A stretch of DNA of 41,135 bases. Source: Cercozoa sp. M6MM. Its lineage: Eukaryota > Protista > Endomyxa: Ascetosporea. This document shows, piece after piece, positions 2,761 to 19,775 of the stretch (the stretch's first letter is position 1; the number at the start of each line of letters is the position of its first letter). The notes beneath the pieces were generated by a model. It saw nothing but the letters and a program-made list of their open reading frames with translations. It searched no databases and was not told the DNA's origin. The position numbers were made by a program, and so were the translations under genes. The stretch is taken from the NCBI GenBank assembly GCA_040357565.1, contig JBDODJ010000100.1; one strand, given 5' to 3'.

Positions 2761-5278
2761 TCATTGAACCTTCTTGGCGTCTTGAAGCGTTTCGACTTTG
2801 TCACTGCTGGCGACGGTTTGGATGTTGCGACGCTTCTTCTTGCGACGAAAGAGGCGCGGTAGCGCTACAACGAGCAGCGGGCACAGCCAGTGTCCCCACC
2901 AGCCCAGCGTGCCCCACGCAGCGACCGATCGACGCCAGTCAAGGAACTGCACACCAGGGACACCAGGGAATAACACTACTCTGCACTCATTTTGTCCAAA
3001 GGGACCTCAAACGCAACGCCAAAGTAGTTCACGCCAGTGTAGGTGAACACAAAGCCGACGAAATTGTACAGCCAGCGCAAGTGTTCGAGTGGTGCCTTGT
3101 TCTGTTCAAACACAGGCAGAATCAAAGCGAGCAACTCCAGGCACTTACAAGAATACCTCCTTCTCAGTCACAAAGAAGCGACGCAGTGTGGCACGTCCCA
3201 CGCCGTCGGCAGCACTCAGAAGTGCCGACGAGACAAAGAAAAGATAGTAGCCCGGCTAAGGAACGAGAGAATATCAAGTGGCAAGCACTGAAGCAAAGAT
3301 AAAGTACGTAGAAGCCGTGCCAGAAAGCAGATGTCACACGGGTCGCCATTGTGGCAAAGCCTGCGTTTGACAATACACGAAAGTCAAAGCAAGTGGAACA
3401 CACAAACACACAAACACACAAACACACAAACACACAGACACACACAGACACACACAGACACACACACAGACACACGATCTCACCCTTGTGCGACATGACG
3501 CCCTTCATAAACGACGGGCGCTGCACACGCAGGTACACGCAGTCCTTCAACCAGGCGTTGATGCTGACGTTCCAGTTCGACGTCAGAGCTAACACATTGG
3601 TCACTTTGCCAGCACCCAGATAAAAGAGCAAAACAAGAAAGTACCAGGCACGGACTGCGCCAACTCCGCACGAAGCAAATTGCCGTTGCTCGAGCGATCC
3701 CAAACCGCAACGAGCGGCGCGTTCGCTGTAATTTCAGAACAGAAAACTCATCACTCGGACCAAAAAAGACGAGAGTGAAGGAACCTTCGTCGTTGTCAGC
3801 TTCGGCCGGAACGAGACGCATGCCGAAACCCGCAGCCACACAACCGGCTTCAGCGAGATACCACGCAAAATAATACTTCCAACTGAACAAAAGAAAACAC
3901 ACACCGTATCAAACACCAACACAACGCACTTTGTGTAACAGTAGTCCTACCGGTAAAGGGATACAGCGAGGGCAGTGAACACAATCTGAACGATTCGCGA
4001 AACCAACGCATTCACGAAGGCGAGCACCGGCACAGCTGCCACTGTCGAAGCTCCAAAAATCGCCGACTTTGCCGGCAGAACCTCAGTGAACCTAGCCAGA
4101 GATGCAACGTTTCTCAGATATAGATATTTGAGCATAGGAGAAAGCAGTACCAAGAAGTTTCAAGCCACGAGTTCGAGAAGTAGTCCATGCTAAGGAATAC
4201 GCCAACGAAAGCGCAACCCGCCTTGAAAAGACATTTGAGAGCCGCCGCCATCGTAGGAACCTGTGTACGCAAGTAAATTTCGTTGACTGACAGAACAGCA
4301 AGTTAAAACGGTACCTGTGAACCCTTTGAGGCCTTGAAGTTCGTCACACGCTTGAGCGTGGCAGGAGCCCAGTCGCCGGTACCGTCCATGAACTCAATGT
4401 ACTCACGAATGCGGAAAGCTGCCCAAACGTTGTAACTGAAGAAAAGAATGAAAGGTCAATCAAAGCTACCAGGGCCTGCGAGAGCACCGCCGAAGAAAAA
4501 CACGAAACTGAAGAACTGCAGAATCGTCACATCCTGGTTCTGAACGAACGAAAGCAAACAAATACAGCAAAAAGGAACATCAACAGTGAAAGCTTGCAAA
4601 AGCAAAATACGTAAGCGGTCTTGACACGCTGCTCGTGAATGTGTGGTTTTGCGGCGAGCTGCTCCTTCTTTTGCATCTTGCGGCCATCGCTCAGATCAAA
4701 AGCACACGTGATGTACTTCGCAGTGAAGATCATCAACGGAGCTGACAGATCAACTTTCCAGCCCATCCTAAAGAAGAGCAACCTTTCCTCAACGGCAGTT
4801 CAAAGGTATTCAAGCTGAGGAAGTACCAATCAACCTTCATTCGGTAAATGTGCACTGTGCTCAGCACCGCCATCGTGAAAAAGCTCACGATTCCCGGCGA
4901 CACCTACAAAAAAAAAGCGTGTGCACCCAATTCAAAGCAAGAGGAAAACTTACACGAAGCTTAGCAATCAGACAGTAGACACATGCGGTGAGTGCGAGCA
5001 GCAGCAGCGTCGATTCATGACCGAGCAGCAGCCACTCAAACAGCACACCCGTCGAGAAGGCCAGGAGGTTCCGCGCGGAAGCGTTTTTCACTTGCTTGAG
5101 CAACCAGCCTAACCGAAACCAACGGGGTTACACGCTTGTGGGTCGCCGACAACATCAGAGTACCAAGCGGCACGGCACTGACGAGGCACAGAAGCAAAAC
5201 GATCTGATCTGATGGGAAGCCCGCCGCCTCAGACAAGCCCTCAAGTGGCTCTCGCACGAAACCAGGCAGGTGGTCCAT
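2761..5278 (-). CDS. MBOAT-family lysophospholipid acyltransferase (LPCAT/ALE1/MBOAT1-2-like), multi-exon
   Basis: Spliced motifs SAPLMIFTAK, FFGGALAGP, KYYFAWYLAEAGCVAAGFG, WNVSINAWLKDCVYLR, ATRVTSAFWHGFY (catalytic His) and GYYLFF. C-terminal KKVQ* is a KKxx ER-retrieval signal. Canonical introns, e.g. 5109-5163. Confidence 0.93.
3399..3476. repeat. Degenerate (CA)n microsatellite in an MBOAT intron
   Basis: cacaaacacacaaacacaca... tract lying between MBOAT exons. Confidence 0.85.
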
Positions 5279-5705
5279 GCTACTCTACACCTAAACACAC
5301 CAGCGCACAATGATGCGTCACAGCATCACTGGTTCAGTCAAAAACAGGAGTGGCTATAGGCGGTGGTGGACGAGCTAAACAACAGAAAGAATAAAGAGAA
5401 AATAATAGCGTGCACGGTGCCGCGCTCAGCACAGGAGCGGAGTCACTCGCATGTGGGGCATTCAGCGCTCCAGCCCTGGCCTGTTCGCCGTTCTGGCAGG
5501 GGGTATAAATGATCCTATCTGAAACGAGACCACCAACCGACCACGTGCGATCACACACCAAAATAATATCGAATAAAATATTATTTGGAACGTATCCCAG
5601 GGGAGATATGATGTATGTGCGTATGTATTGCATATGTGTGTATGTGTATTGTACCGGTATACAGTACAATATAGTTGTTGTCTCAAAAATAATGCGGTGT
5701 CTCTG

Positions 5706-8014
5706 ATGTCAGTGGTCGTGTTCACCACCTATGCGGCAACTTATTGCATTCGGTTTCCCACGTTTGTTCCGACCTACAAGGACAGGACTGCTGTACAAAT
5801 ACCACTGCCTGCATAGACCTGTGAGATTATTTAATCAAGCTACACATGGTATATACAGTTCGGTGTGGAACTGAAAAGCGCGCTCACGATCGCGCAGTCG
5901 TTTGGTTAGTACGTGTGTTCAGCAGTGACTTTGTACTGCAGTCCATGTGTCTGTGTGGCACTCACAGCATTCTGTTCAAGATCCCGACGGTCGTATACTT
6001 CCCGAAACTGCCGAAACGAGCCTGGATGCCTGCGTTGATAGCTGTACCCATCGTGCCACACACAGGGCCAAAAGATGTCGTATCTTGTGTATCCTGTGTC
6101 TTGTTTGCTTGCTACAGTGCTACGCGTGGTCCACGGTGTGTCTGGCTCTCATGGGCTGGTTCACTAGCGGCGAAGGCAAGGTGGTGATGACCTTCCTCTG
6201 TGCCGCTGGGTTGACGCCAGTGTACGCACTTATTGTTCGGTACACGAGCACCATCGATTCACAGAACACTGGAAATAAAAGGCAACTTGTCTTTCTGTAG
6301 TTTCCTGGAGGGTCGCAAGATCACGGAACCCCTGACGGCGATGCTGCTGTTTGCGACAGTTGTGACAGGAGGCATGGCGCGTTCCATTGGTACCTAGCCA
6401 AGATGTGAGCTTGTATCACCCTGCTGACTGACTCTTGTTGTCATGTCCACCAGGCGCATGGTTTCTGACACTTGGCGTGGCCGAGGCTTGGATGCCCTTG
6501 GTGGTGGCCTTGTGTGCCGCACCTGTGTACTGCCTGTCGTCCTACTTGCTACACACGCTGCCTCCGCCGACCGAGGAGGACCGCTCGCTGCGACAGGCGC
6601 GACTGCCCATGACGATTGGTCAGCAGAAGCAGTGGTCGCTCAAATTCTGGCAGCCGCTGTCAGTGTGTGCAGTGTGGTACATTGCCGCCGTTGGCTACCG
6701 CATGTTCCGTGACTGTACGTCTGTGTCCACTTTGTACCAGTGTCCAAGATGCACTGTCCGTTTTGTTTTCTGCCATAGACTTCCAGACGGACATTATGGA
6801 GGAACTCATGTGCGACGTGGGACAGGACCCGGACGAGTGCAGTCCATCTCCTTTGGTGGTACTGTGCGTGTACCTTTGTGTACCCATATCGACCCTATCG
6901 ATATCCTGTTGGCTTGCAGTACACACTTACTGAGTTCGCATGCGGCTCTGTTGTCCTGGCCGCTGTTGTGTCATTGACGCCTCTGAAGAACAACTACAAG
7001 GGTGCTTGTTGGTCCTCTTAAGGAACTTGCCTGTATCATATGCTTGTGATATGTGTAGCCTTCTTCCTCACGATGTTGTACATGGCCATCGGAAGCGGTC
7101 CTTTGGTGACTTTGAGAACAATTGGCGGATAAAGTGACTTTCTGTGTGACCTCTGCTCTTGTACAGCTGATTGGCGGCACGGCTTTGCTCAGTGGTTCGT
7201 CGCCACTGGGTTGGATGGTCTCTTCCGGCACTGGCGTTTCCTTGGTACGTTTGATCAGGGGGTTGCAGCTTAATAGAATATTGCAAGCACCTGTGTAGGG
7301 TGGCAGCATGCTCATCGGTGCCCCTTGGTGGGACCGTCTCATGGCCGGTAAGTGTGAGTATTTTGAGACTTCGGTCTCTTGTGTAATGGGTGTGTGCTGC
7401 ACAGCTGCTGGCGACTCGTACACCGTGTCGTTCCTGTGCTACTGGAGTGACTGTACTTCTTGCTTTGTTCTGCATCCGAATCGGGTTTCGCAAGCAACGT
7501 GTTCTGGCAGTTTTCGGTCACTCGGGCACCATCGGTGTCGTGTTCTACAAGGAGTTCTTCACTTCCGATGATGTCTCATTCGCCTCGTTTTTCGGTAAAT
7601 TCGCATCAGCCTTGTTGTATTTTTTGTGCTTGCTGTTTGAATTGGCTATCGGAGAGTATGTGAGTAGAATCGATCTCGTATGTTGCCGGAGCCTTCATGT
7701 TGTTCTGCTGCATGCTGGCTAGTGCGCTTTGTCCTGTCTGCTCTTTTCTGTTGTGTTTGCACTACTGTGTGTGTGCGTGTGTGTGTACAGCCGTGTTGTT
7801 CCGGTGGAAGCTGCCGAAACCCGACGGCGACAGCGAAGCGACAGAAGCGCTGCTGCCGGCGAGTGTGTCCAAGGACGCCGACAGCGACAGCGAGGTCGTC
7901 GACATTCACGACATGCACGCCCACATCGGCATCGGTTCCGACGTTCGCGACTTCCAGAATACTGGCGCGCGAGGTGTCGACGGCGACAATCAGGATGTCT
8001 CTGTCAACGCGTAA
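5706..8014 (+). CDS. DUF5690-family multi-pass membrane protein (MFS-like putative transporter), multi-exon
   Basis: Spliced blocks follow the recalled DUF5690 consensus in order: FTTYAATYCIRFPTFVPTY, FGVELKSALTIAQSFG, FLEGRKITEPL, AWMPLVVALCAAP..LPPPTEEDRSLRQARLPM, YRMFRDFQTDI, WWDRLMA, TVSFLCYWSD, GHSGTIGVVFYKEF. Acidic C-terminal tail ends at TAA 8014. The start codon could lie further upstream. Confidence 0.8.
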
Positions 8015-15105: not shown

Positions 15106-15748
15106 TTAGTTCGCCATCATCACTGCTCATACAAGGACAGATTCGGCAAGTTCACAAGAGCCAGAAAACACGGTACTCTTCACAAACTCCTCGTAGTTGA
15201 TCTGGCCATCACCATCGGCGTCGGCCTCGCGGATCATGTCCTCGACCTCCTCCTCGGAGAGCTTCTCGCCAAGGTTGGTCATCACGTGGCGAAGCTCGGC
15301 CGCCGAGATGAAGCCGTTGTTGTCCTTGTCGAACACCTTGAACGCCTCGCGGATCTCGTCCTCCGAGTCGGTGTCGCGCATCTTCTTGGCCATCATCGAG
15401 AGGAACTCCGGGAAGTCAATCGTGCCGTTGCCATCAGCGTCGACTTCGTTGATCATGTCGTGCAGCTCGGCCTCGCTCGGGTTCTGACCAAGCGAGCGCA
15501 TCACAGTGCCGAGCTCCTTCGTCGTGATCGTGCCATCGCCGTCCTTGTCGAAAAGAGAGAAGGCTTCCTTAAATTCGGCGATCTGGCCTTCGGTCAGCTG
15601 GTTGGCGCTCTGTGCACACAGCAACAAACATTTGTTCGATCCCACCAAATTGTAAAGCACAAAATCCAAAACGCAAAAAATAAACTCTACATGAAAACAC
15701 CGGCTATTACGGCCAAGCAATGGATCGGAGCAGTTGGTGAGGTACCAT
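15106..15748 (-). CDS. CaM: Calmodulin (3 exons: 15748-15746, 15609-15177, 15122-15106)
   Basis: M|[44 protein letters not shown]...[13 protein letters not shown]|MMMAN*, with four EF-hands. An intron directly after the ATG is seen in many calmodulin genes. Confidence 0.98.
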
Positions 15749-16086: not shown

Positions 16087-19000
16087 TTACTCCGCCAAGG
16101 CCTTCATCAGGGTCGCGAGGTGTCCGCTAAGTTCAGCGTCCAATGTGTCGCTCAGGCGAAGCTGCTTCAAGTTCGCCTGGGCGTGGATGCAAACGAAGTG
16201 AACCTACTCATAGAGGGGTGTAAGAGAGAGCACCAGAGCGAACAAAGCAGGTGTACCAATGCATGCTCGTCTGTGCCGTGGCCGTCACAGTAGCGCGCGA
16301 ATTGTTGCAGGAAGAACGCATTCGAGTCACGAGCGCAAAGCAGCGTGCGGTCAACGAACGCAGTGAGCCACTGCTTTTCGTGGCCGTCAGTGTTTTCGTC
16401 GGTGAGTGAGTCGACAAGAGCTGCCGCAATGTCACTTTGGTATGCAGAAGCAACACACCGCAGAGTCGAGCGCGCTTCTTTTGACAACAGTTGCAAAGCG
16501 TCCATGTTAGTCACGTGCTGCTCAACTTCATCCTACAAGCACATCGGACTGAAGATGCCTAGACAATTTAAAGAAATAAAAACTGACCTTTGTGAGTCCT
16601 CGTTCAGCGCTGCGAACCGAAGTTGCCGCTTGCAGCACACTCACAAGGCGGCGACCGTCGCTCTTCATCTCGGACTCAAGGTCTTTGAGAAGGTCACGAT
16701 TGAATTCTTGGTTGTAGGCACTTGCGACATCGCACTTAAAGGCGGCTGCGCTGATGAGTGTGTCCAAAACACTATTCTCGTTCGTGCCAGCGCCACTCAT
16801 TGCTTCACGTAGCATGTGAGCATGCAGTGTTGCGACGTCCTTGAACAAAGCAAGAGCTCCCATCTCAAGGTCGCCTGAGAGCTCACTCTTCAAATCAGTC
16901 AGTAGGTCACGGTTGAACTTCTCGCCGTACGCACGCTGGATGCCAATGCGTTGCTCAAAGGATCGCGACGACAGCAAGGAGACGATGGCATCTTCGTCAG
17001 TGCCAAGACCCTTCATGGCAGCTCGTAGCGTTTCGGCGTCAGTCTGGAAATCACCATTTTTTTCGCCAGCTACGACCGTGCAGAGTGTCATTTCGACTTC
17101 GTTTGGATCCGGGTACAGCCGCTCGCTCACCTCGGTGTCTGCGCTCTTTGACTCGCTTTGAGGCTTGGCTACGCTCGGTTTGTCCTGGGAACGACTCGTC
17201 TTCGTATCCGCAGGATTCTTCTTGTAAGTCGAAGTAGGTTGGTTCACTAGAGCAGCTTTGGGTTTTCTCGTCGCCTCTAAAACGCGGGGCTTCTCCAGTT
17301 TCACTGCACTCGCGGAGGAGTGCATCGGCGGCACTTCAAGTTTTTGAACTTGCGCATCTTTGTTCGAGTAATTGGCCACTGAGTTGGTGCTCAGCCAGAT
17401 CGAAGGTAGCTCTGTCGTCTTCTGTAACTTAATTTCGACAGAGAGATTTCCGGCGGTTTGTTCTTCGGCATCCTCATCTTCGAAGGTGAAGGAACGTTCC
17501 TGACATGGGGAAGCCAGGCGTTGGAGACCCATATTCCATCCGACGTCGCCTGTCGCACACTGCTCAGCCGTGTCGGTACCTGTGACACCGTCACCATTGA
17601 TCGCTTTGCTTGCACACTCAGCGGCATCTTTCGCCTTACTCTATGGATGATGCAAGTGCGGAAATGCACGGGGCAAACAAAGTCAGGTGCAAACTAAATT
17701 ACCTCAAGTGTGCGAACAATCTGCTGTAGAACTGCTGAATCGTTGTCCCTCGTACCGACGGGCAGTAGTCCTTGCGTTGCCTCTGCTGCTTTCGTTTTCG
17801 CCACGCGAAGTGCAAGAACTCGACGCATAAGCACATCACCGTGGCGTGAGGTGTCAGAGGCAAGACGTCGAACCCTCCGAACAGCTTGTGGTGACTTTGG
17901 ATTTGTTGCGCTTTCTTCGGTGTTGTGCTCGAAGGTTCTGTTCGAAAGTTCCTCGCGCAGACGCTCGGTGGTTGCCTCGTACTCCGACACGCGTGAGAAC
18001 AGTGAGTAGTTTCGTTTATCGGCAGTGTACAGTCGCGTGGTAAGCTCCTCCAAGGAAATCCCAATCCCTTGCTCGATTTGGCGCACGTGCTCGCGCAACT
18101 CCTCGCACCTTGTCTGGGTTTCGTCGAGCTGGGCTTGCTTCTGCTCGAGCTCACGCTGCTGTCTCAAGTAACTGCGCGAAGAATGGAAGCCACTACTCGG
18201 CCGAGAAGATCCGTTTGAAACGGCCTGAATTAAACAACGTATCCTCATTGCCTAGCGAACTGTAAATACATTGCGCATTCGAAAGTGAGTACCGACGCAG
18301 TGCGGCGAGCCAAGGCCTCTCCTTTCTTTCGAAGTGCGACACTTGCACGACGCTCGCGCTCGCGAAATTGCGCTTCAAACTCGGCTTGCTCTATATGCTG
18401 CTGCTTCTTGAGAGCAGTCACCTGTGTGTCCCAGTTGCGACCCAAGGCTTTGATGAGACGAACGCATTCCTTCTGGCGAGTCGTTACCTCCACAAAACAC
18501 TTGTCGCGCTTGAAGAAGGAATCATCACTCTCTGAGATGGCGGTTTGCATTAAAAGCTTCTTGCTCTCTAGTTCGGAAGTCAAATTTGCGACGACCTGAT
18601 CGAAAACCAAGCGGCCACGCTTCAAGGCGTCAATGACTTCAACGAGTTTCTTGCACTGACCGAGCTTGTTGTTGTAGGTGACCTTCGCTTTCTCAAGACG
18701 CGCTTCCAGCCGAGCCACATTTGCGGTACCTTTGCGAGCCTCAATCACAGGCGCGTTGTGCCCGCCGATGCGACGCTTGGTGTCCAAAAGCTCCTGCTCG
18801 GCCGCTTCTACCGCGTCATCGAGTCCGGCCAATTCACCTTCGAGCTTCATCGATTCGGCTCGAAGACGGATCTGCGCACGCTGAATTTTAAGCACCGTCT
18901 CTACTGTACTGCTTCGACCCTGTTCGCCTATCTCCACCGTGTCCGGAATCTGCATTGCCGGGATTTCTCTTCGTTCCGAAGGACCCTGAATTGAGATCGA

Positions 19001-19210
19001 AAGTTAAAATACCGACTGAGAAGATGCTTCAGCGACCGAAATGAGTTCAGCGGTGCGAAAACGAAAGCCGTCTCGCACAGCGTGCACCTTCTCCTTGTCA
19101 CTGCCAAGCACGAGCTTGTCTGAGTGCTTCAACTTACGCAGCTCCAATTGACGCATCTGCTGGTGTAAACCCCCGAGTCGCAGCGCCTTCGGTTGCGCTT
19201 TCTTGCCCAT
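16087..19210 (-). CDS. Fusion protein: ODAD1/CCDC63/ODA-DC2-like coiled coil, S/K/T-rich linker, annexin core
   Basis: The N part KRRIGGHNAP..ARLEARLEKAKVTYNNKLGQCKKLVEVIDALKRGRLVFDQVVANLTSELESKK..AISESDDSFFKRD resembles the ODA-DC2/CCDC114 consensus. The C part DAETLRAAMKGLGTDEDAI..DLKSELSGDLE, LREAMSGAGTNE and GHGTDEHAL..DAELSGHL are annexin repeats. Phase-0 introns 18986-19012, 18225-18292 and 17641-17702 join all ORFs in frame; stop TAA at 16089-16087. A further 5' exon from ATG 19447 is possible. Confidence 0.8.
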
Positions 19211-19775
19211 CTGTGGCTAATTTCCTCCTATCTCCGATGCTTATCGTTTAGTTCGCTCACTCGGTAACTACGCTCCGATTCCTATGACTTTACGTTTGAT
19301 TGAATTTGAAGTTGAAAAACGCTGCTTTCGCGTTTCTTTGTCTGCAGTGTTGACCGCCGACGGCGAACGTCGCGTCAAGTTTGAACGTTCGGTTAACCGT
19401 GACTTTTCGATCCAGGCAAGAATCGCTGACAACTCATGATCGTGCATCGTTTCAAACTGAACAAGTTGCCTGCGTCCAGTGGAGTCCCACATCGCATCGC
19501 ATCCAATCGCCCGGCCTGCCGTCGATGGATCGCGCGGCGGAATTCGAAACGAAATAGCGTAGAGTGATAAAATGAACATAACGTAACCAACCCAACACGA
19601 AACGACAGACGAGATGATCGGAGGCCCGCCGGCCGAGCAGAGTTGCCAGCCAGGTTTTAATTCATTGCAATTGCGTCAAATTGACCGGGACCTGGCTGCA
19701 AACTGAAATAAGACAGAAAACTGGATCGATTCGATAATTGAAGAGCTGGAAACCGGGGAGAGAAACAGTCATGCC

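Follow-up and report, generated by a model that had tools for sequence, protein, structure and literature searches.

The minus strand of contig JBDODJ010000100.1 (assembly GCA_040357565.1, Cercozoa sp. M6MM) carries a series of reading frames that begins with an ATG at 19210 and ends with a TAA stop at 16089-16087 (last coding base 16090), all positions being those of the 41,135-nucleotide (nt) window that was analyzed. The first part of this series resembles the outer-dynein-arm docking protein DC2/ODAD1 and the last part is an annexin, and an earlier note on this DNA had proposed that a 62-nt intron joins the two in frame into a single gene. Re-reading of the sequence confirmed the observation itself, i.e. 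a coiled coil, an in-frame GT-AG interval, a linker and an annexin in this order, with every coordinate correct. The same spliced model is already deposited in GenBank as MES1910820.1 (locus MHM6MM_003349, 931 amino acids (aa), 'hypothetical protein', Cercozoa sp. M6MM), which we retrieved as a near-identical match with an exon 2 query against 1.84 billion representative proteins. When mapped back onto the contig, this protein returned exactly the gene model of the earlier note, intron 17702..17641 included. The spliced gene model is therefore not new, only undescribed, and MES1910820.1 is the sole spliced protein analyzed here. PMC11069148 reports the sequencing of this organism, an amphizoic amoeba of Apofilosa (Rhizaria), which is now named Lemnamoeba sinaloensis and described as an amoeba (PMC13746701). 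The features of the locus are listed below with the evidence for each in brackets.

19013..19210, minus strand: DC2/ODAD1-like exon 1, ATG at 19210 (exact mapping of the public model MES1910820.1; open reading frame, ORF)
18950..19012, minus strand: intron 1, 63 nt, phase 0, GTATTT...GCAG (mapping of the public model)
18293..18949, minus strand: exon 2, N-terminal part of the ODAD1 central coiled coil (Pfam ODAD1_CC; Chlamydomonas DC2; Tetrahymena docking protein)
18225..18292, minus strand: intron 2, 68 nt, phase 0, GTACTC...TCAG (mapping of the public model)
17703..18224, minus strand: exon 3, remaining coiled coil, ending ...IVRTLE (Pfam ODAD1_CC; mapping of the public model)
17641..17702, minus strand: proposed fusion intron, 62 nt, phase 0, GTAATT...CCATAG (sequence; public model)
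17533..17640, minus strand: linker of 36 codons without stop or ATG, strongly periodic with a purine at the first codon position (RNN) (purine count; codon score)
17092..17532, minus strand: 147-codon extension between the first ATG (17532) and the annexin core, probably disordered (open frame; codon usage)
16588..17091, minus strand: annexin repeats 1 and 2 with type II Ca2+ motifs GLGT-x38-E and GAGT-x37-E (Pfam Annexin; PDB annexins)
16533..16587, minus strand: annexin intron, 55 nt, phase 0, GTCAGT...TGTAG (mapping of the public model)
16257..16532, minus strand: degenerate annexin repeat 3 and start of repeat 4, GHGTDE (weak Pfam Annexin; predicted structure)
16177..16256, minus strand: last intron in the public model, 80 nt (mapping of the public model)
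16087..16176, minus strand: last exon with the TAA stop at 16089-16087 (sequence; public model)

The two halves

Exons 2 and 3 of the coiled-coil half each match the Pfam profile ODAD1_CC (PF21773), exon 2 at 1.5e-7 (31.2 bits) and exon 3 at 1.9e-5 over profile positions 133-236, and the coiled-coil frames are intact over ~460 codons with coding-like usage. Exon 2 also aligns in register with residues 97-258 of Chlamydomonas DC2 (2.3e-8) and with a Tetrahymena docking protein (4.1e-8), which are the best solved relatives of this coiled coil; a PDB search with exon 3 alone returned nothing meaningful. The earlier note had suggested a hidden Markov model search of the spliced protein, and the public protein indeed carries ODAD1_CC (40.9 bits against a cut-off of 27, profile positions 3-236) together with Annexin (9.3e-32).

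The genome holds three ODAD1_CC loci, on contigs C697 and C546 and at the present position, and the present one is the weakest. The two others are located as follows.

3273-5162 of stretch L015 (contig C697), plus strand: canonical DC2 gene by its matches (ODAD1_CC; DC2 match)
4342-5730 of stretch L016 (contig C546), minus strand: second, divergent ODAD1_CC paralogue by its match, a 463-aa single ORF (ODAD1_CC)

The C697 protein (596 aa, MES1914764.1) matches Chlamydomonas DC2 at 1e-51 and ODAD1_CC with 146.5 bits. By these comparisons C697 is the canonical DC2/ODAD1 orthologue of the genome, and the present locus and C546 are divergent paralogues. The likeness to Chlamydomonas DC2 (ODA1), human ODAD1 (CCDC114) and CCDC63 that was previously claimed thus holds for family membership, ODAD1_CC being above its cut-off, but not for orthology, the match to DC2 being far weaker here (2e-8) than on C697 (1e-51). 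The present coiled coil further differs from its relatives in that it stops right after the central domain, and no retrieved family member has a C-terminal annexin.

Against Pfam Annexin (PF00191) the ORF of the annexin half scores 9e-31, with two strong repeats that total 106-109 bits, and repeats 1-2 align to annexin VI (PDB, 2e-62), A7 (7e-42), A4 and A5. They are 35-47% identical to animal annexins and retain the K-G-x-G-T...D/E motif. Counted in the translation, the type II Ca2+ motifs are GLGT-x38-E and GAGT-x37-E, exactly as first described; repeat 3 is degenerate, as also described, with no GxGT and no detection by Pfam, and Pfam scores repeat 4 (GHGTDE) only weakly (E 0.0065). The present core departs from four-repeat cores such as A4/A5 in these two points, namely a repeat 3 without Ca2+ loop and a weak repeat 4. 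An Atlas model of residues 628-931 aligned over 292 residues to annexin clusters with a template modelling (TM) score of 0.66 (by hit), the mean predicted local distance difference test (pLDDT) of the model being only 0.54. We conclude that this half is, as predicted from its sequence, a bona fide annexin with two intact putative Ca2+ loops. Its 3' end in GenBank may be slightly off, since with an alternative in-frame acceptor at 16204 the intron would be 53 nt long and repeat 4 would improve: nine more residues (VHFVCIHAQ) would be kept, which are spliced out in the public model and align with an annexin repeat 4 helix.

Junction and linker

The last codons of the coiled-coil frame read ...IVRTLE, down to 17703, and GTAATTTAG comes next, with a GT at 17702-17701. 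The acceptor AG at 17642-17641 forms the last two bases of an in-frame TAG (17643-17641). The codons that follow, 17640-17533, contain no stop and continue in frame into the annexin ORF, which has its first ATG at 17532. The 62-nt phase-0 GT-AG interval (17641-17702) and the 36 stop-free codons that lead into the annexin, as reported in the earlier note, are thus present in the sequence. Long antisense ORFs are common in the ~110 kb of genome examined, and because of them ab initio intron models did not converge; the proposed intron was hence compared with a local set of 22 introns, drawn from the window and from stretches L015-L021 and backed by homology or annotation. In this set 20 donors start with GTA, ~14 of them with GTAC rather than with the usual GTAAGT/GTATGT, the acceptors are YAG, mostly with G next, and the lengths range from 50 to 163 nt. 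With a GTA donor, a YAG acceptor and 62 nt, the proposed intron fits this range as well as the published mean of 82 bp (PMC13746701), and its predicted splice sites are acceptable, not distinctive.

The linker contains no ATG, and its translation would consequently need an upstream exon, so that any sign of coding in these 36 codons bears directly on the fusion. A run of 36 stop-free codons has by itself a chance of ~15-18%. Purines occupy 32/36 first codon positions, as compared to 22 second and 15 third positions, a count with p values of 4e-4 and 6e-4 in mononucleotide and dinucleotide shuffles respectively, both conditioned on an open frame. Only 0.38% of the open 36-codon windows in the ~110 kb reach this value, and those among them that are not simple repeats resemble disordered parts of proteins or are located on the strand opposite a coding region. 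In codon log-odds scoring, with ~8 kb of validated exons as the training set, the linker reached +8.7, to be compared with a mean of 13.7 (standard deviation 7) for coding windows and with a maximum of 3.1 among windows in confirmed introns and in the annexin-calmodulin spacer. Codon usage per codon was nearly the same in the linker (-4.05) and in the adjoining 147-codon extension (-4.06), for which the protein search found no homologue. Four real 5' flanks of other genes, on the other hand, gave -4.33 to -4.79 per codon, every frame being below the linker, and each of them has stops in all three frames. This coding-like character lends the putative fusion moderate and indirect support.

One gene or two

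From these data we favour, with a probability of about 0.6, the reading in which coiled coil and annexin would be one gene that is spliced into one protein. The mRNA would then lose 17702-17641 and encode a protein of ~931-940 aa with an N-terminal divergent DC2/ODAD1-family coiled coil, then ~185 residues of disordered linker and, at the C-terminus, an annexin core of four repeats. This presumes that the splice at 17702-17641 is actually used. Two arguments that had been put forward for it did not survive. The statement that there is no room for a separate promoter fails because the median intergenic distance in Lemnamoeba sinaloensis is 162 bp (PMC13746701, Table 1): the gap from the TAG at 17694 to the ATG at 17532 is 161 nt, equal to this median, and the calmodulin gene begins ~340 nt past the annexin stop. 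The mere existence of an in-frame GT-AG intron is likewise not beyond chance, since with the donor fixed an in-frame GT..AG is possible in 80% of dinucleotide-shuffled 161-nt spacers and an in-frame GTA..YAG in 56%.

Several further observations weigh against a fusion. Read without splicing, the coiled-coil frame gains V-I and reaches a stop of its own (TAG, 17696-17694) two codons past the donor; this donor, GTAATT, is of the minority GTAA type as compared to GTAC in ~14/22 local introns; the annexin ATG at 17532 has an A at -3 and a G at +4; and both halves resemble complete proteins. The linker statistics have their own weak points: its codon usage taken alone is not significant against dinucleotide shuffles (p 0.10), its purine count is extreme even for validated coding windows (0/1952), and a second frame is likewise open across the region. 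The GenBank model, which comes from an annotation made with funannotate trained on RNA-seq, is a pipeline prediction and hence neither independent proof of the fusion nor independent of the same sequence features. Finally, no fused relative was found. Among the best 150 ODAD1-like proteins of the 1.84 billion representatives, the best score besides MES1910820.1 itself was 9e-11 and none exceeded 751 aa; nine non-self ODAD1-like proteins that were scanned carried ODAD1_CC only, with no annexin domain; and among the 120 best long annexin proteins (candidate lengths 512-1629 aa) only MES1910820.1 had both domains.

Other searches gave the same picture. The ODAD1_CC-annexin architecture was seen neither in Atlas clusters nor in the literature, and two scans of metagenome contigs, one for the annexin ORF and one for exon 3, returned no relatives. 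The 90% cluster of MES1910820.1 has one member, and no same-species fragments appeared in any protein search. The supplements of PMC11069148 mention neither the present locus nor ODAD1 nor annexin, and the words dynein and annexin are absent from the main text of PMC13746701. The earlier statement that this combination is not known from any described protein is in keeping with the searches made, which found it nowhere else.

The main competitor to a single gene, which we consider rather unlikely while giving it more credit than any of the other alternatives, is a pair of tandem genes: a DC2-like gene ending ...TLEVI at the TAG at 17696-17694 and an annexin gene that starts at ATG 17532 and encodes a long disordered N-terminus, the two being merged in annotation through a chance in-frame GT..AG. 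The 161-nt gap, the frequency of chance introns in shuffled spacers and the lack of a fused orthologue in our searches would all be expected in this case, as would the natural stop of one half and the well-placed start of the other. The DC2-like product would also have a normal stand-alone length (~460 aa, as compared to the 463-aa ORF on C546 and the 552-aa Chlamydomonas DC2), and a long low-complexity N-terminus is usual for annexins, the paralogue on contig C40 having a Q-rich one. Two tandem genes would nevertheless leave unexplained why the 36 codons before the ATG are stop-free, RNN-periodic and similar in codon usage to the downstream extension, which the four genuine 5' flanks are not; moreover, a transcription start upstream of ~17627 would place out-of-frame ATGs (17627 and ~17597) ahead of the annexin ATG. 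A start even further downstream, at the Met at 17091 just before the annexin core, was rejected, as the 183 stop-free codons upstream of it would have a chance of only ~1e-4 to 4e-4 if they were non-coding. The locus might also give rise to both products, splicing yielding the fusion and intron retention a stand-alone DC2-like protein, possibly with an internally initiated annexin transcript. The stop 6 nt inside the intron, a minority-type donor GTAATT that could be weak and the good context of ATG 17532 are compatible with such a scheme, which is otherwise speculation from geometry and in our view the least probable of the readings considered.

Annexin composites, neighbouring genes and possible role

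The single-gene reading gains from other annexin genes in the same genome. On contig C46, trefoil blades of the fascin/FRG1 type (1e-8, 2e-6) are followed by one uninterrupted ORF (L019 5225-5806) in which a third blade motif leads through a Q/P/M-rich linker to annexin repeat 1 (3e-7), and a gene of similar appearance is found on C181.

C46 24719-27154 (L019 4719-7154), plus strand: fascin/FRG1-like trefoil-annexin gene (profile matches; ORF)
C181 (L018 3290-5453), plus strand: similar trefoil, Q/P/M-rich or polyQ linker and annexin core (looks like C46)

Given the single ORF on C46 and the similar gene on C181, composite proteins with an annexin core as their C-terminal module do exist in this lineage, which raises the prior for the fusion. 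As at the present locus, these genes have a cytoskeleton-related module at the N-terminus that a low-complexity linker connects to an annexin core at the C-terminus; they differ in that the C46 junction lies within an uninterrupted ORF and needs no splice, whereas the present junction rests on a predicted intron. A proposed fusion of a CFAP97-like region to annexin could not be matched to a locus: CFAP97 (PF13879) gave a single Pfam match genome-wide, at C509 4879-5199 on the minus strand, and no annexin match is listed on that contig. Outside this lineage, the vertebrate annexins A7/A11 likewise have a variable head N-terminal to a C-terminal core, theirs being a low-complexity tail and the present one potentially an axonemal-type folded coiled coil of ~460 aa.

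The neighbouring genes were also inspected. A calmodulin gene lies at 15106-15748 on the minus strand, co-oriented with the annexin, and its product ends ...EEFVKMMMAN. Its exon 1 consists of the ATG alone (15748-15746), its introns are 15745-15610 (136 nt) and 15176-15123 (54 nt), and a TATA-like CTATATAAG is found ~80 nt upstream of the ATG. On the other side, within the 565 nt of 'intergenic' DNA that precede the DC2-like start, lies a 103-aa ORF (19268-19579, minus strand). Its 36-codon windows reach coding-like scores of up to 17.5, and it may represent a short gene or exon that the annotation lacks.

In the docking complex, DC2/ODAD1 pairs with DC1/ODAD3 on the protofilaments of doublets and anchors the outer dynein arms. 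The complex has separate Ca2+-sensing EF-hand subunits, DC3 in Chlamydomonas and calaxin in vertebrates, and the alpha-giardins of Giardia are free-standing flagellar annexins. Both offer a conceptual parallel only, as no specific sequence relationship was seen with the present protein, whose best annexin matches are animal-type. In a spliced protein, the coiled coil might bind microtubule doublets as DC2 does and the annexin end might bind acidic phospholipid membrane upon a rise in Ca2+, so that the protein would tether a microtubule-bound coiled coil to the membrane. Such a Ca2+-gated link between axoneme and membrane is physically reasonable, purely conjectural and, to our mind, improbable. 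A broader form of the same idea appears a shade less probable still: annexin cores of Lemnamoeba would serve as a general Ca2+-switched membrane anchor placed on cytoskeletal modules, either a fascin-like actin-bundling trefoil or a doublet coiled coil, and the present protein would provide, via its ~185-residue linker, a Ca2+-dependent connection of doublets to the membrane in an unobserved flagellate stage.

Whether an axoneme is ever involved depends on the biology of the species, which is described as an amoeba and for which we found no report of a flagellate stage. The genome holds at least five loci for dynein heavy-chain C-termini (C284, C46, C10, C144 and C124), RSP3 on C310 and IFT57 on C38, and gave no match for tektin. 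With dynein heavy chains, RSP3 and IFT57 encoded, the protein may serve in the axoneme of a stage not observed so far. Alternatively, the DC2-like half may be a decaying or repurposed paralogue without axonemal role, and the fusion would then be unrelated to flagella. The low rank of this locus among the three ODAD1_CC loci, the amoeboid description and the missing tektin match agree with that proposal, whereas its intact, coding-like frames and the axonemal genes that the genome keeps do not, and we regard it as quite unlikely.

Should the splice not be real, the locus would stand as a warning: with a median spacing of 162 bp, an in-frame GT..AG between neighbours is the rule, and novel architectures in public annotation need transcript support. 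Should it be real, the locus would encode the first member of the docking-complex family found here with a Ca2+- and membrane-binding domain of its own. Such a protein would suggest a direct Ca2+-dependent link from axonemal doublets to the flagellar membrane, and it would add to the evidence of a cryptic flagellar apparatus in a species known only as an amoeba.

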